From Blastocladiella emersonii ATCC 22665 (lineage: Eukaryota > Fungi > Blastocladiomycota), in the NCBI GenBank assembly GCA_025594325.1, contig JANHCV010000006.1, positions 1,426,001 through 1,490,000 of the forward strand: a DNA stretch of 64,000 nucleotides, written 5' to 3'. Positions 11,912 to 63,817 of this stretch are shown here, piece after piece; the stretch's first letter is position 1; each line of letters opens with the position of its first letter. The translations under genes and the position numbers were made by a program. The notes below the pieces were generated by a model, which was not told where the DNA came from, ran no database searches, and saw nothing but the letters and a program-made list of their open reading frames with translations.

Positions 11912-14900
11912 ATGTCCAGCCCGAGCGCGACTTCCAGCAGAACCGACTGCGCCACCGATGGTCGTGGCGGCAGCGACCCCGCGCCGGGGCTCCCCGCAAG
12001 CTCGAGCGCGTCCAGGTCCGCGTCCGGATTACCGCCGGCGACGCCCGCACCGACTTCAGGCATGGTGCCGAACTCGGCCCCGATGACGCGCCGCGACTTT
12101 GCCGCGCGCGGGACCCTGCCGCTGAACGCCGCTGCCTCGATCGCGGCCGCCGCGGCGCGCAGGCCGAGCTACCGTGGGCAGACGGCGCGGCCGCCGCCTC
12201 GAGCCCCGGGCCTCCCGGAAACCCAGTCGGCGTCGACCGACTCGATCGCGACCACCTCGCCCGTCACCGTCACCGTGACCATGCTGCGGCAGTCGAGCGA
12301 GCTGCACGACTCGGACCAGGACCAGTTCCGCACCGCGTACCCGACCGTTTCCAGCCGCACCTCGAACAGCACCGGATCGTCGTCGAGCGGCGCGCGGCCG
12401 ACCGTCTTCGACTCGCCGTCAAACCGGCGCCGCGGGATCGGCTCCGCCACCTCCTCGGCCAGCCGCCCTTCGCGCGCCCCGACGCTCAACCTCTCCACCA
12501 CCCGGTCGCCGCCGCAGGGCACTCTGCCGCCGCTCGCCGCCAGCGTCCTCAGCGGACTGATCCCGGCCTCGGCCAACTCGTCGTACCACGAGCTCGACGA
12601 GCACCCGCACCGCCAGTACTCGGCCGCGTCGCCCACCACGCGCAGCACTAGGGCGAGCAGCGCGCTCCAGTCGGACACGTGGCATTCGGCTCGGAGCGCG
12701 CTCAGCGTCAGCGGATCGGGGTCGGGCGGATCGAGCCGGTTCCGCAACATCCTCGCCAACACGTCGCAGGCGCTCAGCTCGTCGTTTCAAAAACTCGCCG
12801 AGCTCGCCGAGGGCGTCGCCCAGGGCCGCGACAAGGATGCGGATCCCGAGGCCAGGACGCCGCTCGTCGACGAGGACGGGTCCGCGCGGGTCTCGGGGTC
12901 CGATCAGTCGATCAAGGTCGACACGGATGCGGACGTCGAGCGGTACCAGCGCGAGTGCTCGCTCGACCACGGCGGCGGCGACAACCTGGGCGGCTCGCGT
13001 CCGGCACCCCCTGCCGCCTCGCCCGCCCCTTCCGCCGCCGGACCTCGTTCGCCCATCATGATGGACCTCGTCGATCCCGAACAGCAGCCAGACGGCGAGT
13101 CGAGCGGCCCGAGTTCGGCTCACTCTACGCCGCCGTCCGCTCGCCACGAGGACGACGAGTTCAACCCGCTCGCCCACACCGTGCTCGGGTCCGCGGCGCG
13201 CGTGTTCGTCAGCAAGTCGACGCGGCTCGTCTCGTTCCGCACGTTGCGGTTCTCGAGCAAGGCCATCGAGACCAAGTTCCACGAGCACTACGTGCGGACT
13301 ATGTCGGCGCCCATCATGGTCCTGACCGTGCGTATTTAGCCCTCAGTTCTTGATGCAGGACCAGGCTAACGCGACCTCGTACCCTCTTAGATTGGTCTGC
13401 TCCCGCTCATCTTCTCGCGCGCGGGCCTCTCCGTGTACACGTCCATCAAATACCAACAAGTTCTCGCCGACTGCCCGACCACGGTGCTCGGCGAGTGCGC
13501 CTTGTGCCAGACCGTCGTCTCGATCATGTACCTATGCATTGGCATCGTCACGTTCCTCCTCGTCTTCGTGTCGCTCACGCTCCGAGTCGAGGCGCCGGGC
13601 TCGCGCCGCGTCCTCTTCGTCATGATCGCGGTCCTCTGTTTCCTCGTCGAGCTGCTCGCCGTGACGTGCCCCGGCTACTGCCACGCGCGCGACGGCTCGC
13701 CGCTGTTCCGCAACCACAACGACTTCACCGAGGAGTGTCCCGGCTCGGCCGCCGCGGGCAGCATCGATGCGTTGCTGCACTTTTGGGCCACCGAGATCAG
13801 CGTGTCGTGCTACGCGCTCGTCGCCGCGTCCACGCTGCCGTTCCGCACCGCGCTCATCGCAGCGATCCTCGTCGTCGTTTCGGTCACCGTGTTCGGGTCG
13901 CACATCGACAGCAGCGCGGGGTCGTGGATCTGGCTCATCATCTTCAACCTCGCCGACGACGCCGTCAAGTCCCTCGTCGGCCTGTACCAGCGCGAGCTGC
14001 TCGTCCGTGCAACCTTCTACCACAACGTCCGCCAGGCCGCCGCCACCCACGCGCAGCTCCGCGCCGCCGCGACGCATGCCGTCCTGCCGTACACCAACAC
14101 GCACGGCAACGGCCACACCCACGCGCACAGCGGTGCGGGTCCAGCCGGTAGCGGCGGTCCGCGGTCGCCGCCAACCTCGCCGACCGGGATCAAGTCACCA
14201 ACCTCGATCGGCCAGATCTCGGTCACCAGCGCCTCGTCGGGTCCCGGCAAACCGAAGCGGCTCGACTCCGGCTCGCCGTCGGGTCTCGTATCGCCGCGCT
14301 CGTCCAAGCCTACGGTCATGGTCAACATGCCGCTGAACTACCACCAACAAGAGCCGTCGGCGTGGACCATGGCGCCCGAAATGGCCAGCACGGCCGTCGG
14401 GGCAATCCAGGTTCGTACTCTCCCCTCGCTCAGCTCTCATCGTACTCACACGCAGATTTGAGGTGTAGGCGGCCCGCCGTGTTTCGACCGCGACCGAAAC
14501 AAGCAGCAACACGGCCATCATGACGTTCGGCGCGCGCTCCGAGATGGCCGTGGGCGGCGCTCGGCGGCTGTCGTACGCGGCCGCCGCTGGGCCACGGCGC
14601 GAAAGCGTGATGAGCGCGGCGACCACCGTGACGGCCGGGTCGCTCCTGCCCGGGTTCGCCAAGATCCACATCTCGAGCCTGCCGAGCGAGTACGAGGCGC
14701 TCTCGACGGGCTCGGCGTTCCGCCCCGTCCCGCTCGGCGTTGGGAGCGGCGGGAGCAGCGGGAGCCCGCTTGGCAGCAAGCTCGGAGGGTCCGGCGGCGC
14801 CATCCACGTCTCGCAGCTCGACTTCAGCAACCTCCTCACGCTCCCGCGCGCCATGCACGCGTCGCTCATGTCGATCCGCCAGTCGGCCGCGCACAGCGTC

Positions 14901-16628
14901 GATCCGGACGGGGTCGGTCACGACCAGGACGGCGACTACGAGGACCGCAGCAAAACCAACCGCATGTCGTCGCCGGAGCTCATGGAGCCGGCTGCGCCGG
15001 TGGTTCCACTCGGTGCCGCCGCTGCGACGATGCGGCAGTCCGTGCCCACCCTCGTTTCGTCGCCCGCCGCGCCCGAGTCGGCGGCGCGCAGGACCGCCAA
15101 CCGCTCGCTGCCGACGACCCCGCTCGGCACCATGGGCGGGTCGCCGTGGTCGGCCCCGCTGTACCTCAACGCGCCGCAGGTCGTGGTCGTGGCCACGACG
15201 CTCGACCAAGCGCACGCCGGGCGTGACGCGCTCGACGACCAGTCGGACAGCGACGAGTTCCACGACGGCCGCGACCTCGACATCCCGCACGGCGCGCTGT
15301 CGCTGCAGTCGACGGTCGCGTCCAATAGGTCCACGGTCTCGTCCAACGGCTCCACGACGTCGAGCACGTCGTCCATGGACTCGAGCTCGACGGCAAGCGA
15401 CCCGAGCAACCACGGGGACAACAACAGCTCGGGCGCGCTCGGCACCAGCGTCCCCGCGCTCAAGCACCAGCTGCGCGCCGTGTCCGACTCGGCCGTCCTG
15501 CCGCACCAGCACCCGAGCCCGCACCGTCCGCTGCACGACGCGTGGGGGAGACACCCGCGGGAACGCGACCGACCGAGCCGCGCGTTCAGCAACGTGCGCG
15601 ACTCGGTCGTCATCACGTCGTCGATGCTGCCCGCGCTCGAGCCCATGGGCCTCGACGCCGCGCTGCACCGCACCGAGGAGAACTACACCAACAGCGTGTC
15701 GACGAGCTCGATCCTCGCGCCGCGCGGCAGCGTCGCGAGCGGGGCCGACGCCGCGGCGCGGCGGAGGCAGAGGCGCATGTCGCGCAGCACCACGGCGTCG
15801 GCGTCGAAGCGCAGCAGCGGCTCGTCGTGGTACCGCCGGCTGCGGCGCGTCGTGCACCGGCTGCGCGGCGAGTTCTTTTACAAGTTCCCCGACCGCGACG
15901 AGGAGCAGCGGTACCTCGCGTACTCGTACGTCAAGCTCAAAATGCGCATGCAAATCACGGCCGTGACGGGGTTCATGATGCAACTCCTGGTTGCCGTCAT
16001 GATGAAGCTGTCGCAGGCTGGGCGGCAGGCCGTCAACGACGCCGTGGACAATACGGATGACCCCGTCGGCAACGGCATGTTCGGCGACTGGCTGGCCAGG
16101 GTCAAGCCGTTTGTCCTCGAGTGGTGGTTCCCGTACGCGCTACACCTCGCCTTCTACACGATCCAGCTGGTCGTCGCGCGGTCCCGGTCCGCGCTGTTCG
16201 TCGGCGCGAGCCTCGAGCGCTACGCGGTCGCGCACGCCGTCATCTTCATCGCGTGCGTGGTCGCGCTCGACGCACAGATCCGCATGCTCACGCACAACTT
16301 TGTCCTGATCCAGTCGGCGTGCCACCAGGTTCTCGCCGCCGTGTTCGGAATCACGACGTTACGGCTGCGCCCGCGCGCTCACGGGGTTGTCCTCGTGGCC
16401 TTTGTCCTGGTCGCCCAGATCGAGTTTGCGCTGCTCCTCGTCAACGGCGCGGCCATCGAGACGCTGGCTAAGACCGTGATCGTCACGTCCACGACGCTCG
16501 TTAGTCTCGTCCTATCCGTCTACTTCGAGTCAGCGAACCGGCGGTACTTCCAGGTCAAGTCGCACGTTGAGCAGAGCGCGTCGCGGAGCCGCGCGAACCT
16601 GCCGCATCTTCCTCCCCCCCTCCGATGA
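11912..16628 (+). CDS. 12-TM protein with adenylyl-cyclase-type membrane anchors but no cyclase domain, paralog A (1531 aa)
   Basis: Phase-0 introns 13328-13390 and 14411-14468. Anchor 1: LRFSSKAIETKFHEHY ... YQRELLVRATF ... AVLPY. Anchor 2: YKFPDRDEEQRY ... YFESANRRYFQVK. Stop follows about 20 aa later; AATAAA at 16634. Confidence 0.8.
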
Positions 16629-17084: not shown

Positions 17085-19052
17085 TTACCGCGCGCCGAAC
17101 CCGCCCGCCGAGACCCCGCCCATCGCCACATCGCCGCCGCCGCCACCTCCGCCCTGCTCGGCATCGATCTGGGCCCACAGCCGCGTGAGGGCGTCGTCGC
17201 GGCGCGGCAGGTCGTGGCTGAGCACCGTGAAGGCCTCGAACGCGCTGATCGCGCGCTTGACGCGGTCGTACAGCGAGACGCGCGACGCGAGCAGCCCCTC
17301 GAGCGCGGCCTGCGTGCGCTCCAGCGGGTTGCCCGCCGGGATCGCCACGCCCGCCGTCTGCATCCCGCCCACACACGAGCGGACGAGGACCGACAGACGG
17401 TGCAGGTGCGGGCACTCCTCGACGCGGTGTTCCGTGTCGCGCTTGTTCTCGATCGCCGCGCAGAACCGGCACGCGCCTGGCCGCGCGGCGACGGACACGG
17501 CGCCGAGCCGGTCCACGAGGCCCGCGCATGTCACGGTCGGGTCGACGAGGAGCGCGGGTAGGAGGGCCGCGGACTCGCGCGGGATGCACTGCGCGACCGA
17601 CAGCGTGCGCGCAAACTCGGCCTTGAACAGTGTGCCGGACTGCAGCGCCTCGACGGGCCCAAGCCGCGACAGGTGCGACAGGAACGTGCGCAGCACCGCC
17701 GGCACGGGTTTCCCCGCGAGCTGCTCGGCGCTCGCCTCGCGCCACTCGCACGTCCACCGGTGCAGGTGCTCGGGCTGCGCGTCGCCGAACAGGACCGCGA
17801 GAAAGGCAGCGCCCGCCTGCGAGTCGGGCATGGCCCCCGAGAAGCCAACGGCCGCGAGCCGGTCGCGCACGTCCGCGTCCAGGTCCTCGGCGACGACTGA
17901 GAGCGCGACGGCGAGCGGCAGCGGGGCCGCGTACTCGCGCAGCATGTCGAGGAACTCGACCGGGTCGCGGGTCCAGTACCGGTCGCGCTCGCCCACGCCC
18001 GACACCTTGGTCGTGCTGTACCGCGGGCCGCCGCGCTGCAGCCGCGTCACGAGGTCGCGGTCGGCGCCGTCCAGGTCGAGCGTCACCGCGGGCCGCGCCG
18101 TGACGTCGAGCGGGTGCGCCGGGCCCGCCGCGGGCCCGGCGAGCGGGTACGACGGCTTCGATGACGCCATGTACGGGCCCGCGTTGGGCGCCATCGGGTA
18201 CAGCGCGCTCTGCGACGTCGAGGCCGCGGAGATGGTGGGCGACGGGAACGAGGAGCCGGTCGCCGAGGCGGGCGCGGTGGGTGCCGGTGACGCCGGGAGA
18301 CCGGCGCGCGAGGGGGCGGGGACGGGGATGGGGGCGGGCGTGGGGGCGGGAGCAGCAGCAGCGCCGGCCTGCACGTTGTTCTTGAGCGCGGCCTGCTGGG
18401 CCTCGTAGGCGGAGGCGACCCCCGGGTTGAGGGCGGCGAGGCGCTGCGCGTCTCGGCTGAAGGCGTCGAGCTGCTCCATGATCCAGCGGACGTGGCCAAA
18501 CTCGGCCTGGAGGTGCTGCATCTGCTGCATCTGCTGCATCTGCTGCTGGAACTGGGGCTGCATCTGGGCGCCGGGACTCTGCTGCTGCATGAAGCCGTTG
18601 GCCTGCATGCACTGATACTCGAGCATGGCGTAGTGCTCGGCGTAGTAGGACCGCAGCAGCTCGGCGGCCGACCGGATCTCCGCCACCTGCAGGCTCGACG
18701 TGATGTTGCCTGCGGGCAGGAACTCGGCGGCCATGCGGTCGAGCTCCAGCAGCGTGTGCTTGGGCTGCGGCGGCATCGGCATCCCGCCCATGTGCATCGC
18801 GGGCGGCGCCATGCCGGGCATGCCGGGCATCCCGCCCATGGGCATTCCCATCGCGGGGGCCATGCCCATGGGCATCCCGCCACCGCCCATGCCCATCGGC
18901 TGCAGCTGCATCTGGCCGGGCTGCTGCTGCTGGTAGTACTGCTGTTGCTGCTGCTGGTGGTTCTGCGGGTGCGCGGGGTAGCCCTGCTGCTGCTGCTGCG
19001 GTGGCGCGCCCGGGTGGCCGCCGTACTGGCCGCCGTAGTGCTGGTGGTTCAT
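17085..19052 (-). CDS. Intronless protein: Q/G/M/P-rich N-terminus, helical segment, Gag-capsid-like region and CX2CX10HX4C knuckle (655 aa), copy 1
   Basis: Long ORF with host-like codon use and a close paralog at 20973-22598. Motifs RDPVEFLDML and CRFCAAIENKRDTEHRVEEC. The Gag assignment is inference. Confidence 0.7.
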   Translation of the reverse strand: MNHQHYGGQYGGHPGAPPQQQQQGYPAHPQNHQQQQQQYYQQQQPGQMQLQPMGMGGGGMPMGMAPAMGMPMGGMPGMPGMAPPAMHMGGMPMPPQPKHTLLELDRMAAEFLPAGNITSSLQVAEIRSAAELLRSYYAEHYAMLEYQCMQANGFMQQQSPGAQMQPQFQQQMQQMQQMQHLQAEFGHVRWIMEQLDAFSRDAQRLAALNPGVASAYEAQQAALKNNVQAGAAAAPAPTPAPIPVPAPSRAGLPASPAPTAPASATGSSFPSPTISAASTSQSALYPMAPNAGPYMASSKPSYPLAGPAAGPAHPLDVTARPAVTLDLDGADRDLVTRLQRGGPRYSTTKVSGVGERDRYWTRDPVEFLDMLREYAAPLPLAVALSVVAEDLDADVRDRLAAVGFSGAMPDSQAGAAFLAVLFGDAQPEHLHRWTCEWREASAEQLAGKPVPAVLRTFLSHLSRLGPVEALQSGTLFKAEFARTLSVAQCIPRESAALLPALLVDPTVTCAGLVDRLGAVSVAARPGACRFCAAIENKRDTEHRVEECPHLHRLSVLVRSCVGGMQTAGVAIPAGNPLERTQAALEGLLASRVSLYDRVKRAISAFEAFTVLSHDLPRRDDALTRLWAQIDAEQGGGGGGGDVAMGGVSAGGFGAR

Positions 19053-54880: not shown

Positions 54881-57800
54881 ATGTCATCGCCTACTTCCAG
54901 CACCGGATCCGCTGACGCCTTCTACGGCGCTATCCGCACACCACCACCGCGGCCCGCGGGGCTCGTCTCGAGTGCGAGCGCACCCGAGTCCTCACAAGAT
55001 GTGGAGCGGGCCGCGTCGGCGGAAGCGGCAGCCGGCACGCACGCCCCCTCGTCGAGCACGCTAGCCAACTCGGCACCGATGCTCCGGCGCTCACACACGG
55101 CGCGGGTCGGCGCACCCGCGCCACACCACCCCGAGTACTCCGCGAGCGCGGCCCCTGTGGTGACGGCCGTATCCAGCGCCCACGAGCAAGACCATGATCC
55201 CGCGCAGGCGTTGCCGGCTGCACCCTCTACGGGCACGAACCCTCGCCGCGAGTTCCCGACAGTCAAAAGCGACGCGTCGAGCTCGCGGCCGCCAAGCATC
55301 TTCGACTCTCCGTCCTTCCGCCGCCGCGGGTTCGGCGCCGCGAGCTCGTCAGCCGGCCGCCCGCAGCGGTCCGCGTCGACGGCGAGCAGCGGACCCAAGC
55401 CGCCGGGCACGCTGCCCCTGATCGCTCGCCTCAATAACAGCCTGGTCCCGACGTCGGCCGACTCATCGTACCACGACCTCGACGAGTCCGCGTCCGCGTC
55501 CCTCGCGCAGTCGCGAAGCGCACGCGGCAGCGCCGCGTCGTGGCGGACGGCGCGCAGCTCGTTCAGCGGGTCCACGTCAAGCCGGTTCCGGACTGTCCTC
55601 GCCACCACGTCGCGCGCGCTCAACTCGTCGTTCCAGAAGGTCGCCGAGCTCGCCGAGGACGTGGCGCAGACGCGTACCGCCCACTACACGGACCTCGCGG
55701 CACACGCGCGGCTCGTCGGCGGCGACGACGGGTCCGCGACGACCGGGTCCGACGACTCGTTCAAGTCCAACGAGCTGGCGGACGCGGATGCGGATCGCTC
55801 GCTCCCGTCCTCCTCGCTCGACGGGTTTGACGTCGACTCGCTCGGCGAGCGGTTCGAGACTGGGCCGTCGTCGCTGGCCGAGCTCGGCCCGCCGCCGCCG
55901 CCACCGGCCGCAGTCGGCGAGCCCGCCATCACGACGCGACCGGACCCCGAGGCCGGGTTCACTGCGCCATCGGCGCAGCCGACCGCGCCTGCCGCACGCC
56001 CTGCACGCCGGGTCGACGACGACGAGCCGAACGCGGTCGTGCGCACCGTGCTGGGTTCCGCCGCGCAGATCTTCACGAGCAAGTCGACGCGGCTCGTCTC
56101 GTTCCTCACGCTCCGCTTCACGAGCAAGTCGATCGAGGCCAAGTTCCGCGAGCACTACGTGCGCACTTCGTCGGCGCCCATCCTCCTCCTCAGCGTACGT
56201 TCCCGCTCGGCGCGGAAGTGAGATTTGCTGACGAGCACTATGTGTGTTGTGTAGGTTGGCCTCCTCCCTCTCATCTTCGCCCGTGCCGGGCTCTCGGCGT
56301 ACACGGCGAGCAGGTACCACCAGGTCACGCACGACTGCCCCATGTCCGTCCACGGCGAGTGCGACACGTGCCAAAGCATCGTCACGGTCGCGTACGTCGT
56401 GGTCGGCGTGGTCGCTCTTCTCACGCTCGGCGTGTCGCTCTTGCGGGCGCTGCGCATCGAGTCGCCGGGCTCGCGGCGCGCCATCTTCATCGCCATCTCC
56501 ATCGTGTGCTTCCTGATCGACCTCATGGCCGTGACGTGCCCGGGCTACTGCCACACGAACGACGGCAGCCCGCTGTTCCGACGCCACAACAGCTTCTCGG
56601 GCGCGTGCCCCGGATCCGCGGCCGCGGGCAGCATCGACGCCCTCGTCCACTTCTGGTCGACGCAGATCAGCGTGTCCGTGTACGTCGTCCTCGCCGCGTC
56701 GACGCTCGCATTTCGAACCGCTGGCCGCGGCGCTGTCCTCGCCGTCGGGCTCCTCCTCGCGTTCGGCGCGCTCGTCGATAGCAGCGCCGCGTCGTGGGTC
56801 TGGCTGCTGGCGTTCAACCTCGCTGACGACGCCGTCAAGTCGCTCGTCGGCCTGTACCAGCGCGAGCTGCTCGTCCGTGCAACCTTCTACCACAACGTCC
56901 GCCAGGCCGCCGCCACCCACGCGCAGCTCCGCGCCGCGGCTACCAGTGCGGTGCTCCCGTACGTTGGCGGCTGCGGCGCGGGCGGCGGGGCTGCGGTCGC
57001 GCCGTCGCCGGCTTGGTCGACACCGTCCCCGCGCGAGCAGCGGTCCGCGGCCGTCACGGTGCGCAGCAGCGCAACGGCGCTCCCGAACAAGTCGGTCCTC
57101 GCCCAGGTCCCGGCGCAGTCGACCAAGACGGTAGCCCCCGCGCAGCCCGCGGCGCCCCAACCGCAGATGCGCGACTCCTCAACGTGGTCGCTGGTCGCCC
57201 AGGTACGCTGCTGCCCTGCCGTTGACACGTGGTCCGCACTCGGCCAACCGAATCGCTTTGTAGCCCGTCCGTCGCACGCCGACCACAACGAGCAGCAACA
57301 CGGCCGTCATGGCGTACAACCGCAACGAGACGTCGCTGATGATGCTCCGCCGGCACTCGTTCGCAACCAGCCGCACCAGCGCCGCGAGCGCGTCGACGAC
57401 TGCCGCTCAAGGAGTCCCGGCGGCAATGGCCATGGCCATGGCCCTGGCCAACCCCAAGACCCACATGTCGCGGCTCCCGAGCGAGGACGAGACCATGGCC
57501 ATGTCCAAGGGCTCGCAGCACCAGCACCTCGCCGTCGCCGACCCGCTGACCGACGCGTCGTCTGGTCGAAACAGCAACACCACGTCCGACTCGGGCGGCG
57601 GCATCCACGTGTCGCAGCTCGACCTCGGTAACCTCCTCACGCTCCCGCGGATCATGCACGCGTCACTGCTCTCGCTGTCGCACTCCGACACGTTTGGCGG
57701 TGGCGGCGACGACACCAAGCCGGTATCGCCACCCACCGCGCCCAAGTTCCTCGCCCCGCTCCCGCTCGGCGCGATCGAGAGCGGAACGCGGTACGCGACT

Positions 57801-59381
57801 ACGACGCTCGACCGCCCCGACTCGAAGTGGCCGGGCAGCGGCGGCACCGCGACCAACACCCTGCTGCCCTCGGTCATCGGGTCCGCCGCCGCGTCGCCGA
57901 CGCTCGTGCGCGCGCACCTCGACGCGCCGCGGCTGGTCGTCGTCGCGACAACGCTCGACCACGACGCAGTCGTGGGCGCGTCGGCCAGCGGCGTGTCGCT
58001 ACCGCCGCCGCTGCGCGATACGGGCGCGCTGCAGTCGGACCTGCCCGTGTTCCACCCGACCATGGCGTCGTACGCGACGGCAACTACCACAACAACGACG
58101 TCGGGGACCGACTCGAGCAGCGGGAGCACCAACTCCGTGAGCTCCAACACCACGAGTCCGCCGAGCACCGACCCGAGCACCGACCCGAGCAGCGCGGGCA
58201 GTAGTCTCGGAGTCCTCGGGTCCAGCGCGCCCGCCATCCCGCGACAGTCGCGGTCCGGGACCGACTCGGGCGCGCTCCCGCCGCACCGCCCGCTGCACGA
58301 CGCGTGGCGGCGCCCGGTGCCGCGGTACGGGGACCGGCCTGATTTCGCAAGCGGCGGAGGCGGTGGCGCTGGCGCTGGCAACGTGCGCGACTCGGTGGTC
58401 ATCACGTCGTCGATGCTGCCCGCGCTCGAACCCATGGGCCTCGACGCGGCGCTAAGGACCGACGAGGAGTACAGCGTTTCGACCAGCTCGATGCAGGGTG
58501 CGGCCAGCAGCACCGCCGAGGCGGCAGCAGCAAGGCGCAGGGCGCGGCGCCAGTCGCGCGGGACCACGGCGTCGGCGGCGTCGCGGCGCAGCACGTGGTA
58601 CCGGAGGCTACGGCGCGCGCTGCACCGGCTCCGCACTGAGTTCTTTTACCGGTTCCCCGACCCGGCCGAGGAGGAGCGGTACCTCGCGTACTACTACGCG
58701 AAGCTCAAGACACGAATGCAAATCACGGCCGTGACGGGGTTCCTGATGCAACTCCTGGTCGCCGTCATGATGAAGCTGTCGCAGGCGGGGCGGCAGGCCG
58801 TCAACGACGCCATGGACGATACGGATGGCCCCGTCGGCAACGGCATGTTCGGCGACTGGCTGGCCAGGGTCAAGCCGTTTGTCCTCGAGTGGTGGTTCCC
58901 GTACGCGCTACACCTCGCCTTCTACACGATCCAGCTCGTGGTCGCGCGGTCGCGGTCCGCGCTGTTCGTCGGCGCGAGCCTCGAGCGCTACGCGGTCGCG
59001 CACGCCGTCATCTTCATCGCGTGCGTGGTCGCGCTCGACGCACAGATCCGCATGCTCACGCACAACTTTGTCCTGATCCAGTCGGCGTGCCACCAGGTTC
59101 TCGCCGCCGTGTTCGGGATCGCGACCCTGCGGCTGCGTCCGCGCACTCACGCGGCCGTCCTCGCCGCGTTCGTGCTGCTGGTGCAAGCCGAGTTCATTGT
59201 CCTCCTCGTCCACGGCGCGGCCATCGAGACGCTCGCCAAGATTGTCATTGTCACGGCCACGACGCTCGTCAGCCTCGTGCTCAGCGTGTACTTTGAGTCG
59301 GCGAACCGGCGCTACTTTCAGATCAAATCGCACGTCGCGCGCGCGTCGCAGAGTCGACGGGATCTTCCATTTCCCAATTGA
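54881..59381 (+). CDS. Cyclase-less 12-TM adenylyl-cyclase-anchor protein, paralog B (1459 aa)
   Basis: Phase-0 introns 56195-56254 and 57203-57263 at positions equivalent to paralog A; same anchor motifs; ends YFESANRRYFQIKSHV...PFPN. Confidence 0.8.
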
Positions 59382-59797: not shown

Positions 59798-62700
59798 ATG
59801 ATTCATATGCTCGAAGCAGAGCATATGGCTGGGCTTGTCCTGTTCCCGCTTCATCTCAGTCCAAGTCTCCCACGATCTTTCGCGTTTGCACCGGACGGGG
59901 ACCCAGCGCCGCCCAGCGCAGCCTGCAGCGCGTCAAAAGTCGTGGAGCAAAATGAAAAGGTTTTTAACCACTACATGCACTACGCAGCTGATGTAATGCA
60001 TCCGATCACGGCGAAACCAGCATCCAGCACCGAATCCATCGCTCGCGCACCCTCGTTGCCACATCATGTGGAAGTCGCGACCACCACGAGCGCCCCGGTG
60101 CCGTCTCAAGAACTCGCGACGGGGGCCTCGGCGGCGGCAGGTGACTCGCAGGATCCAGCCTGCACATCGCACTCTCCTTCGGTTGCCAACGGCGGCACCA
60201 TGCTCGTTCATCAGGATCTTGCACCCTTCGGCAGTCTGGCTACATCTTCCGCCAACTCTTCGTACCATGAACTAGACGATCAGGAGCTTTGGTCGGCGCT
60301 GACGGCGCAAGATCGGGGCACACGGGCTAGCGCCGCGCTGAACTCGGACACTTCCTGGCGGACGGCACGGAGCTCGTTTGGCGGGTCCGCGTCGGGCCGG
60401 TTCCGCAGTGTTCTGGCCACGCTCAACTCGTCGCTTCATAAACTCGCCGAGCTCGCCGAGAACGCGGCGCACTCGCGTATCGCTCACTACGCAGACCTCG
60501 TGGAAGACGCGCGGCTTGTCGTAAGCGACGATAACGACGTGGCCAGCGTATCCGACGAGTCGCTTGATTCCGAGGAATCTTCCTCAGCCGGCGGCGTGTC
60601 GTCCCGGCCGGCCTCGTCCCTGTCGCTGGACATGGGCGGCGACCGTCAACCTGACGCGCTCCTCGATGCTGGGCCAGCACCGCCAGCTGAGCTTGCTCCA
60701 CCGTTATCTTCGGGTGCAGCTGAGGCCGCCGTGCCTCTGCGGCCGGGTACCGGGCCGGATCTGATCACCCCACCGCCCGCTCCTTCATCGCCGAGTACTG
60801 CTCAAACTCTACGACGCGGTGGCGACGACGAAAGAGACAATGTGCTTGTCCGTACGGTTCTCGGTTCCGCCGCGCGCATCTTCACCAGCAAGTCGACGCG
60901 GCTCGTCTCGTTTCGCACGTTGCGGTTCACGAGCAGGTCGATCGAGGCCAAGTTCCACGAGCATCACGTCCGCTCTTCTTCGGCGCCGATCATGATCCTC
61001 AGCGTACGTTCTTCCGATGCTTTATTCGAGACTCGCAATGACTGACACCGTTTGTGCCCGCCACCGCCAGGTTTGTCTCATTCTGCTGATTTTCGCTCGC
61101 GCGGGACTCTCGTGGTACACGCACCTCAAGTACAGCTGTGCCATGGCCGACTGCCCAACGTCCCTCTACGGCGACTGTGCCTCATGTCAGACCATTGTCA
61201 CTGTCGCGTATGTCGGGATCGGCGTGCTCGCTCTCGCCGCGCTCGGGCTTACCCTGACGCTCCGTGCCGCGCCCATTGCTTCACGGCGCTTGCTCTTTAT
61301 TATCGTGGCGATCTTGTGCTTTGGCGCAGAGATCATGGCCCTGACCTGCCCGGGCTACTGCCATACGAGCAACGGCGACTCGCTCTTCCGCCGCCACAAC
61401 AGCTTCGCTCAGGCGTGCCCTGGATCCGCTGCCGCGGCCAGCATCGACGCCCTCGTGCACTACTGGTCGACGCAGATCAGCGTGTCCGTGTACGTGGTCC
61501 TCGCCGCCTCGACACTCCGCTTCTGGACCGCCTTCCGCGCAGCCGTGCTTGGGATCGCGCTCGTGTTCCTCCTCGGGTCGATTGTCGACAGCAGCGCCGC
61601 GTCCTGGGTGTGGCTGCTCGGGTTCAACTTCGCCGACGACGCCCTCAAGTCGCTCTTTGGCCTGTACCAGCGCGAGCTGCTGTCCCGCGCGACTTTCTAC
61701 CATAACGTCCGCCAGGCCGCCACCACGCACGCGCAGCTCCGCGCCGCGGCCACCATTGCACCGTGTAGTCCGCGCATCGCACGGCTACTGCAACAGGTAG
61801 CACCCCGGCGTTCGCCGCGTCCGCCCGGACCGAAGCGTCGATGATGCTGCTCCACCAGCACTCGCACGCGACCAGCCGGGCTAGCACCAACGGCACACCG
61901 ACCGCGGTCGTGGCCACGGCGACAACGACTCAGCCGTATCCCATCGCGGACACCGTGACCGCGGGAGTCGCTCTACCCGCCGTGACGACTCGGGTCCACC
62001 TGTCGCGGCTGCCGAGCGAGGACGAGGTGCCGGCCAGCTCACAGCACCTCCCGATCGTCATCAACCACCCCGCCGCCGTAACGCCAGCTCGGCTCGGCGT
62101 CGCCTCCGACTCGGGCGGCGTCATCCGCGTGTCGATGGTCAACCTCGGCGACCTCCTGACGCTGCCGCGGGCCGTGCACGCGTCCTTGCTCTCCCTAAAC
62201 CACTCGAACGCGGCGGGCGGCATCAGACGCGACGACCATCCAGCGGCAGTCGTCGCGGGCCTGTCATCAACCTCGACCAGCGCGCTGCACCAGCCCAAGC
62301 TCAAGGTTTCGGTCGGTGCGTTCGAGGGCGGCACGCGGTACGCGGTCACCACGCTCGGGAAGTCGAGCGGGACCGACGATGACGATCGTCCCTTCTCGCC
62401 CTCGTTTTCCGACATGCCGCGCCTGATTCTCGCGGCGACGACGCGGGATGCGGCGGACCGCGAGTCGATCAGCAACGAGGCGCCCGGGATGGAGACGCTG
62501 CAGCCGCCGCGCCCGCACTCGCCAGAACTGCATGCAACCGCGGCCTCGGATGGAACGGCGGCCACATCCACGACCAACGAGACGAACTCGATCAGCGATA
62601 CCGCGTCGTCTACCAGCACCAACGCCAGTATCCGGACGGGTACGAGCAGCGGCACCGGCAGCGCGGCCAGCAGTCTCGCGGCGCTCGGCGTGAGTGCGCC

Positions 62701-63817
62701 CGTCATTCCACAGCCGCCGCGGCCGCGCCCCTCGACCGAGTCGGGCGTCCTCCCGCCGCATCGCCCGCTGCACAACACGTGGCGGTACAAGGCGCAGCGG
62801 GCCGAGTACGTGGGCGGCGGCAACGTGCGCGATTCGGTGGTGATCACGTCGTCCATATTGCCCGCGCTCGAGCCCATGGGCCTCGACGCGGCGCTGCGTC
62901 CCGACGAAGAGCACAGCGCGTCGAGCAGCTCGATGCAGGGCGCGCCGAGCGGGAAGGCAGCAGCAGATGCGGCGCGGCGCCAGTCGCGCGGTACCACTGC
63001 ATCGTCGGCGTCGCGGCGCAGCACGTGGTACCGGAGGCTGCGGCGCGCGCTGCACCGGCTCCGCACCGAGTTCTTTTACCGGTTCCCCGACCCGGCCGAG
63101 GAGGAGCGGTACCTCGCGTACTACTACGCGAAGCTCAAGATACGAATGCAGGTCACGGCGGTGGCGGGGATCCTGACGCAGCTCCTCATCGCCCTGTTCC
63201 TCAAGCTCTCGCGCGCGGGTCGCGATGCGGTCAACGACGCCGAAGCTGACGAGCTGCACCCGCTGGGCGGCGGCATGTTCGCGTGGCTCGAGCCGTTTCG
63301 GCCTATCCTGCTCCAGTGGTGGTTCCCGTACGCGCAGCACATCCTCGCGTACCTCCTGCAGCTCGCGGTCGCACGGTCCCGGTCGGCGTGGTTCACGGGC
63401 GCGAACCTCGAGTGGTACGCGGTGGGCCACTGCATCGTGTTCGTCGCGGGCGTCGTGACCGTAGACATACAGGTCCGCGTCATTACCAGCAACTACGTGC
63501 TGGTGCAGTCGGCGTGCCATCAAGTCCTCGCCACGGTGCTGGGGATCGCTACGCTCAGGCTCCGGCCCCGCGCACACGCGACCGTGCTGGCGGCATTCAT
63601 CCTGCTGGTAGTGGCCGAGTACGCGCTGCTCCTTGCCAACGGCGCGGCCACCGACACGCTAGCCAAGATCGTGATCGCGTCGTCGACGTCGCTCATCAGC
63701 CTCGTGCTCAGCGTCTACTTTGAGCTGGCCAACCGGCGGTACTTTGTGATCAAGTCGCACGTCCAGCGGACGTCGACGTTGCGCCGGCGCCGTGACCCTT
63801 CGTCGGCCTTCCACTGA
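59798..63817 (+). CDS. Cyclase-less 12-TM adenylyl-cyclase-anchor protein, paralog C; the second intron's donor region is deleted (split gene, pseudogene or cryptic splice)
   Basis: Intron 61004-61070 is normal. After QLRAAAT the sequence runs straight into an acceptor (GTGTAG, 61763-61768) and the coding frame changes. Both halves are otherwise open. Confidence 0.7.

Follow-up and report, generated by a model that had tools for sequence, protein, structure and literature searches.

Three paralogous genes with two membrane blocks each

The stretch of DNA analyzed here (the window) comprises 64 kb of contig JANHCV010000006.1 of the zoospore-forming fungus Blastocladiella emersonii ATCC 22665 and contains three paralogous genes, A, B, and C, whose products are deposited as hypothetical proteins and are predicted to resemble the membrane anchors of transmembrane adenylyl cyclases (tmACs). 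An initial annotation had placed genes at 11.9-16.6, 54.9-59.4, and 59.8-63.8 kb, each encoding two blocks of roughly six transmembrane (TM) helices, and the exon models as well as structure prediction with AlphaFold2 (AF2; six helices per block) agree with this description. All three proteins share the same order of a disordered N-terminus, a six-TM block 1, a disordered linker, a six-TM block 2, and the stop codon, with the following features (positions in the window; aa, amino acids):

11912..16628 (+): gene A, H9P43_005802, 1531 aa; exons 11912-13327, 13391-14410, and 14469-16628; stop codon 16626-16628
13328-13390 and 14411-14468: introns of gene A (GTGCGT..CTAAC..TAG and GTTCGT..TAG, respectively)
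13244..14080 (+): TM block 1 of A, aa 445-702; juxtamembrane helix LRFSSKAIETKFHEHY, TM1-TM6, and a predicted cytosolic TM6 extension of ~25 aa (YQRELLVRATFYHNVRQ...)
14081..15815 (+): linker of A in the place of the C1 catalytic domain; ~560-580 aa, Ser/Thr/Pro/Ala-rich, containing intron 2
15816..16598 (+): TM block 2 of A, aa 1262-1522; basic amphipathic helix WYRRLRRVVHRLR, FYKFPDRDEEQRY, TM7-TM12, predicted cytosolic loop TTLRLRPR, and TM12 extension FESANRRYFQVK
54881..59381 (+): gene B, H9P43_005812, 1459 aa; exons 54881-56194, 56255-57202, and 57264-59381
~56111-56896 and ~58596-59336 (+): TM blocks 1 and 2 of B
59798..63817 (+): gene C, H9P43_005813, ~1296 aa with an uncertain start codon; exons 59798-61003, 61071-61706, and 61769-63817
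~60920-61706 and ~63026-63763 (+): TM blocks 1 and 2 of C

Each gene consists of three long open reading frames (ORFs) in different frames, which are joined into a single frame by short, fungal-type introns of 58-67 nt; in gene A, the first of these interrupts the codons for TM1. The spliced translation of A contains zero internal stops and is identical to the database protein P0001 from M51 onward, gene B matches the database protein P0002, and a start with MSSP is common to A and B. Within the GC-rich window (65-75%), the GC content at third codon positions of gene A ranges from 0.84 to 0.99 in every 100-codon window, which indicates that the whole frame is coding, including its low-complexity parts. 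Among the three genes, ratios of nonsynonymous to synonymous substitutions (dN/dS) are lower in the TM blocks (0.23-0.43) than in the N-terminal regions and linkers (0.6-0.8). The genes thus look real, and their TM blocks are kept under purifying selection. Block 2 is especially similar between A (15828-16568) and B (58596-59336), with a dS of 0.30 and a dN of 0.07 compared to a dS of 0.5-0.9 in other regions of the same pair, which fits gene conversion between copies that lie 43 kb apart.

Copy C deviates from the other two around its second intron. The intron matches the NCBI model (P0004) and has a weak donor (GTCCGC at 61707) with the acceptor at 61768; only via this donor does the gene stay in frame, since the frame of the unspliced exon 2 stops at a TGA (61842-61844) that overlaps the ATGATG of the next ORF. 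The DNA at this junction is identical in separate short-read contigs from the same sample. Copy C lacks ~130 aa found in A and B (61700-61850), corresponding to the helix following TM6 (VRQAAATHAQLRAAATHAVLPY) and the start of the linker.

The boundary motifs quoted in the initial annotation are all present in the spliced products. Block 1 starts with LRFSSKAIETKFHEHY in A, LRFTSKSIEAKFREHY in B, and LRFTSRSIEAKFHEHH in C and is followed by ELLVRATF or ELLSRATF, with AVLPY coming next in A and B only. Block 2 starts with YKFPDRDEEQRY in A and YRFPDPAEEERY in B and C, and it ends with YFESANRRYFQVK, of which B and C carry near variants; the stop codon lies 16-25 aa after RRYF, in line with the previously noted end of the proteins ~20 aa past block 2. 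Likewise, the low-complexity sequence described for the C1 position was recovered as a linker of 581, 546, and 419 aa in A, B, and C, with a Ser and Thr content of 24-26%.

Basic residues are concentrated in loops with a predicted cytosolic location, and every conserved cysteine is found across the membrane from them, so that an N-in/C-in topology can be read from the sequence, with both termini and the linker predicted to be cytosolic. The extracellular TM1-2 and TM3-4 loops of block 1 are cysteine-rich, and the conserved cysteines noted earlier turned out to be six residues (C..G.C..C in the TM1-2 loop; C...C and C in the TM3-4 loop) that are invariant or nearly so throughout the family described below. 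From N- to C-terminus, the family conserves a juxtamembrane F..(3-5)..E.K[FY] helix, the six cysteines, N-L-x-D-D-x-x-K in TM6, and YQRE..R..F; then a linker with an L..L.TLPR island, [FL]FY.FP...E..Y, and a block 2 with WW as well as QS..HQ in TM10; and finally the loop TTLRLRPR and FE...RRYF. YQRE..R..F after TM6 and FE...RRYF after TM12 are its most conserved cytosolic motifs. Several islands within the linker are kept as well, e.g., IHVSQLDFSNLLTLPR and NVRDSVVITSSMLPALEPMGLDAAL in the alignment of A, B, and C, and LxxLPR in the family consensus; these are candidate docking or modification motifs.

The island [IV]S.L....L.TLPR (14700-15700 in A, and the equivalent regions of B and C) is found as far as Allomyces and Catenaria, while NVRDSVVITSSMLPALEPMGLDAAL and PHRPLHDAW are kept among close paralogs.

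Absence of catalytic domains and extent of the family

In tmACs, two class III catalytic domains (PF00211) follow the membrane blocks, C1 after TM6 and C2 after TM12. Both are absent in A, B, and C. Pfam searches retrieved no relevant family, and no PF00211, from the nine exon ORFs of the three genes (E ≤ 1), no domain from six relatives (E ≤ 0.1), and no Guanylate_cyc, AC_N, or MASE from all block sequences scanned (10 rows for block 1 and 15 for block 2; E ≤ 10). All six frames of the window were also scanned for the three class III catalytic motifs with loose regular expressions, and metal, substrate, and transition-state motifs were missing from every frame, so the reported lack of catalytic motifs holds for the genes, their surroundings, and the relatives alike. 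The linker that takes the place of C1 is unfolded in both AF2 models presented below, with a predicted local distance difference test (pLDDT) score <50 (residues 259-786 in the model of A). Since no catalytic domain is encoded, the proteins themselves are predicted to make neither cAMP nor cGMP.

The end of the protein shortly after block 2 is common to the family: members whose models end at block 2 have a stop 3-50 aa past RRYF in three genera (Blastocladiella, Allomyces, and Catenaria), with the sole exception of P0010, which carries a low-complexity tail of ~100 aa past RRYF. The intergenic gap between the stop of B and the start of C spans 417 bp, the downstream neighbor of C is ECM29, and no cyclase gene was found in the neighborhoods of two paralog loci.

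A phmmer search with block 2 against 1.84 billion cluster representatives resulted in 14 matches, all from Blastocladiomycota and none with an extra domain. They comprise ~9 gene models of B. emersonii, which are spread over several loci on two contigs, as well as one protein from Allomyces javanicus and proteins from Catenaria anguillulae. Three further Catenaria fragments were added by a profile search with block 2, and a word-indexed search with block 1 yielded nothing new beyond Catenaria fragments. The three copies initially counted are therefore correct for the window, but the family is larger, with ~9 or 10 gene copies in the B. emersonii genome and further members in Allomyces and Catenaria; no cyclase-bearing relative was found among its members by Pfam or phmmer. 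The family is Blastocladiomycota-specific, tandemly expanded, and stand-alone.

Some of the deposited models of paralogs differ from the layout of A and B. The 1781-aa model H9P43_005816 (P0003, L001:10001-17616, ~10 kb past the end of the window) is a chimera, consisting of a complete fourth paralog, a decayed partial copy, and an unrelated multi-TM C-terminus; the decayed copy keeps N-terminal islands, the LRF..IEAKF motif, and TM9-12, while most of its helices are lost. On another contig, two tandem complete copies are fused into one protein of 2504 aa (P0005, H9P43_002691). P0006 and P0008 (L002:20499-23370), which lie downstream of P0007, are fragments of a single copy or of two, and the model P0004 is truncated at its N-terminus.

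Predicted fold and relation to adenylyl cyclase anchors

For structure prediction, residues 405-1481 of P0001 (1077 residues, gene A) were modeled with AF2 using a family alignment and no templates. Helices were predicted in block 1 at model residues 2-45, 54-81, 87-114, 138-164, 169-190, and 197-248, and in block 2 at 808-827, 834-885, 895-929, 938-965, 969-989, 993-1016, and 1020-1068. Per-10-residue means of pLDDT range from ~71 to 97 in block 1 and mostly from 83 to 96 in block 2, with one loop at 56-62. In this model, the chain forms two hexahelical bundles that pack as a 12-TM pseudo-heterodimer, as is characteristic of tmACs.

A Foldseek search of the PDB with this model, the comparison with adenylyl cyclase (AC) structures called for by the initial annotation, ranked the TM domain of human AC9 first (probability 0.95) and AC8 next (0.91), with E-values that are not significant. 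In the Swiss-Prot part of AFDB, Drosophila AC2 was the top match and the remaining high-probability matches were tmACs, again with E-values that are not significant. A second model was generated for the Catenaria homolog P0013, which is 22% identical to A; its scores against the PDB were 23.3 for AC9 and 20.5 for AC5 (451 aligned residues), compared to 11.9 for the diguanylate cyclase ImcA and ≤8.5 for the rest, and the top matches of both models are identical. Thus, the predicted packing of the 12 helices is that of AC9, AC5, and AC8, no other PDB entry comes close, and a better match to a family other than the ACs was sought by structure search and not found. Among language-model neighbors, AC_N clusters (scores of 0.91 and 0.89 for blocks 1 and 2) were found together with the bacterial MASE and 6TM_PilS families.

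The family is predicted to share its 12-TM packing with the mammalian AC anchors (AC9, 6r3q/7pd4/9u3s; AC5, 8sl3; AC8, 8buz), to which it is ~11% identical in the structural alignment, with no similarity at the level of hidden Markov models. In contrast to these cyclases, it lacks C1 and C2, has a disordered linker of 420-580 aa in the place of C1, ends ~20 aa past TM12, has short stubs instead of the helical domain, and carries a cysteine-rich ectodomain element in block 1. The stubs are formed by TM6 and TM12, which are predicted to run ~25 residues into the cytosol (helices 197-248 and 1020-1068) and lie where, in cyclases, the coiled coil to the catalytic dimer begins; the structural alignments extend to AC5/AC9 residue 1042. 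A phmmer search of the PDB with the TM6 and TM12 extension segments retrieved no cyclase, and in copy C the TM6 extension is largely missing.

Similarity to enzymes with a single six-TM block is weaker or differs in architecture. Mycobacterium tuberculosis Cya/Rv1625c (7yzi, 7yzk), with one six-TM block and one catalytic domain per chain, is active as a homodimer, and the family matches it much more weakly than the eukaryotic 12-TM anchors. In Pseudomonas aeruginosa ImcA (8wcn), one block is followed by an output enzyme domain, unlike in the family, and the same is true for the proteins whose six-TM domains matched block 2 in AFDB clusters with high probability and E-values of 0.04-0.3, which are not significant: a PDEase-domain protein, a Taphrina histidine kinase, a protist guanylate cyclase fragment, and a bacterial diguanylate cyclase. 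The first of these (A0A0L0SI35, named PDEase-domain-containing) matches block 2 through its N-terminal six-TM domain (Foldseek probability 0.99, E 0.09). By its accession, we take it to be an Allomyces protein; if so, six-TM modules of this predicted fold would be joined to several output domains within the phylum. With the bacterial six-TM sensor modules (MASE, 6TM_PilS), the family shares neither a Pfam match nor the arrangement of a single block followed by an output domain.

Several observations weigh against the view of these proteins as tmAC-type anchors. No cyclase at E ≤ 10 was retrieved from the complete set of PDB sequences (AC5, AC8, AC9, and Cya among them) with family profiles or with the boundary segments as queries, and no block sequence scanned matched Pfam AC_N (PF16214) or MASE at the same threshold. 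As these profile and segment searches matched no cyclase, the likeness of the boundary motifs to those of animal tmACs, on which the initial annotation had built, has no statistical support, and the tmAC-type anchor proposed there is supported by the predicted 12-TM fold with its top matches to AC9, AC5, and AC8, but not by sequence homology. Because such homology is undetectable, the link to ACs draws on predicted structure and language-model neighbors, and common descent from a tmAC is read entirely from predicted structure. The E-values of the Foldseek matches to ACs (0.02-0.5) are not significant, and the family alignment behind both models comprises only 15 sequences. An internal duplication of the two blocks is weakly detectable and suggestive at most (hhalign of block 1 against block 2: P 1.4e-4, probability 52%, 32 columns covering the juxtamembrane motif and TM1). 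The splicing of A, B, and C was deduced from consensus splice signals, an uninterrupted frame, biased codon usage, and the match to the deposited models.

Possible roles of an anchor without an enzyme

Weighing these points, we consider it reasonably probable that A, B, and C are Blastocladiomycota-specific membrane modules of the tmAC type (2 x 6 TM) without catalytic domains that act as receptors or scaffolds rather than as enzymes. What is best supported is the structural part, namely that the models predict AC-type 12-TM anchors, under purifying selection and without catalytic domains; from this, we infer a receptor or scaffold function. In these proteins, a disordered linker with conserved islands takes the place of C1, and a stop codon that of C2. 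A lipid or extracellular cue might be sensed by the TM bundle or by the cysteine-rich, possibly disulfide-bonded ectoloops, and this would shift the TM6 and TM12 stubs together with the adjacent basic loop TTLRLRPR. The shift could then alter the binding of partners to linear motifs conserved within the disordered regions on the cytosolic side, so that signaling would occur without cAMP or cGMP from the protein itself. That the 12-TM module of the AC type works as a receptor of this kind in its own right, which senses a lipid or extracellular ligand and signals through its conserved disordered tails without any cyclic nucleotide, is a more tentative proposal, which we regard as possible but doubtful.

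The main alternative is that the proteins are regulatory or decoy subunits, which form hetero-oligomers with genuine membrane cyclases of B. emersonii through their TM bundles and tune the activity, trafficking, or localization of these enzymes. The predicted fold match to AC anchors agrees with such a role, and potential partners exist, as the genome encodes 17 nucleotide cyclases, including multi-TM forms with two AC domains (PMC9730499). Moreover, the dimerization of mammalian tmACs is mediated by their TM domains (PMC12414865). However, no cyclase gene lies beside the paralog loci examined, and a simple decoy would not need long conserved disordered regions or cysteine-rich ectoloops, which makes this alternative rather unlikely. 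The multi-TM cyclases with two AC domains of this organism (groups 6 and 7 of Leonard et al. 2022, PMC9730499) carry PF00211, which the family lacks, presumably have the same overall membrane architecture, and stand out as the likeliest evolutionary origin of the family or as its likeliest partners. An improbable alternative is that the fold is convergent or more general, with the proteins being 12-TM transporters, channels, or structural proteins that are AC-like in helix packing only and share neither ancestry nor mode of action with the cyclases.

Two further explanations concern the data themselves. Catalysis could come from an unseen exon, from trans-splicing, or from a soluble cyclase domain that has its own gene and binds to the TM6 and TM12 stubs. 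The annotation was made ab initio (funannotate, PMC9730499) and does contain imperfect models, either fused (P0003, P0005), N-terminally truncated (P0004), or fragmentary (P0006, P0008). A split or mis-modeled enzyme is nevertheless very unlikely, considering that in-frame stops follow 3-50 aa after RRYF in nearly all paralogs of the three genera (P0010 alone having its ~100-aa tail), that no frame of the 64 kb contains a cyclase motif, and that the downstream neighbors are unrelated. An AF2 artifact caused by the shallow alignment of 15 sequences, which the predicted TM-scores of 0.57-0.62 might suggest, appears barely credible, as the two models agree in their top matches despite being derived from sequences that are 22% identical, the TM blocks have high pLDDT scores, and the modeling was template-free. 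Nor can the AC-like fold have been memorized, because the training data of AF2 end in April 2018 and the first full-length tmAC structure (6r3q) did not become public until May 2019.

The role of the membrane-embedded ~35% of tmACs has been a standing question since 1989. This part has been called a blind spot of signal transduction (PMC12414865), and AC anchors have been argued to be lipid receptors (PMC11606603, PMC4821796). A chimera of CqsS with the catalytic domain of Rv1625c has also been built (PMC4821796). In the family described here, a predicted AC-type anchor has been kept under purifying selection and expanded in tandem arrays while both catalytic domains were discarded, which implies that the module is useful by itself. 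The family therefore offers a natural way to test how such anchors function in isolation, and a simple system for finding their ligands and partners, free of effects of G proteins and catalytic regulation. If the module is indeed a self-sufficient receptor, the cyclase anchor would have, or once have had, an autonomous capacity for ligand sensing that is separable from catalysis. B. emersonii already serves as a model of sensory signaling by cyclic nucleotides through its rhodopsin-guanylyl cyclase, and its genome paper surveyed cyclases via PF00211 (PMC9730499). No earlier description of AC anchors without a cyclase was found in the literature searched; while the fold is known, the architecture of an anchor without an enzyme is new.

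The next gene downstream of A (17085-19052, minus strand) encodes a protein whose N-terminus is rich in Q and in M/G and precedes a conserved domain.

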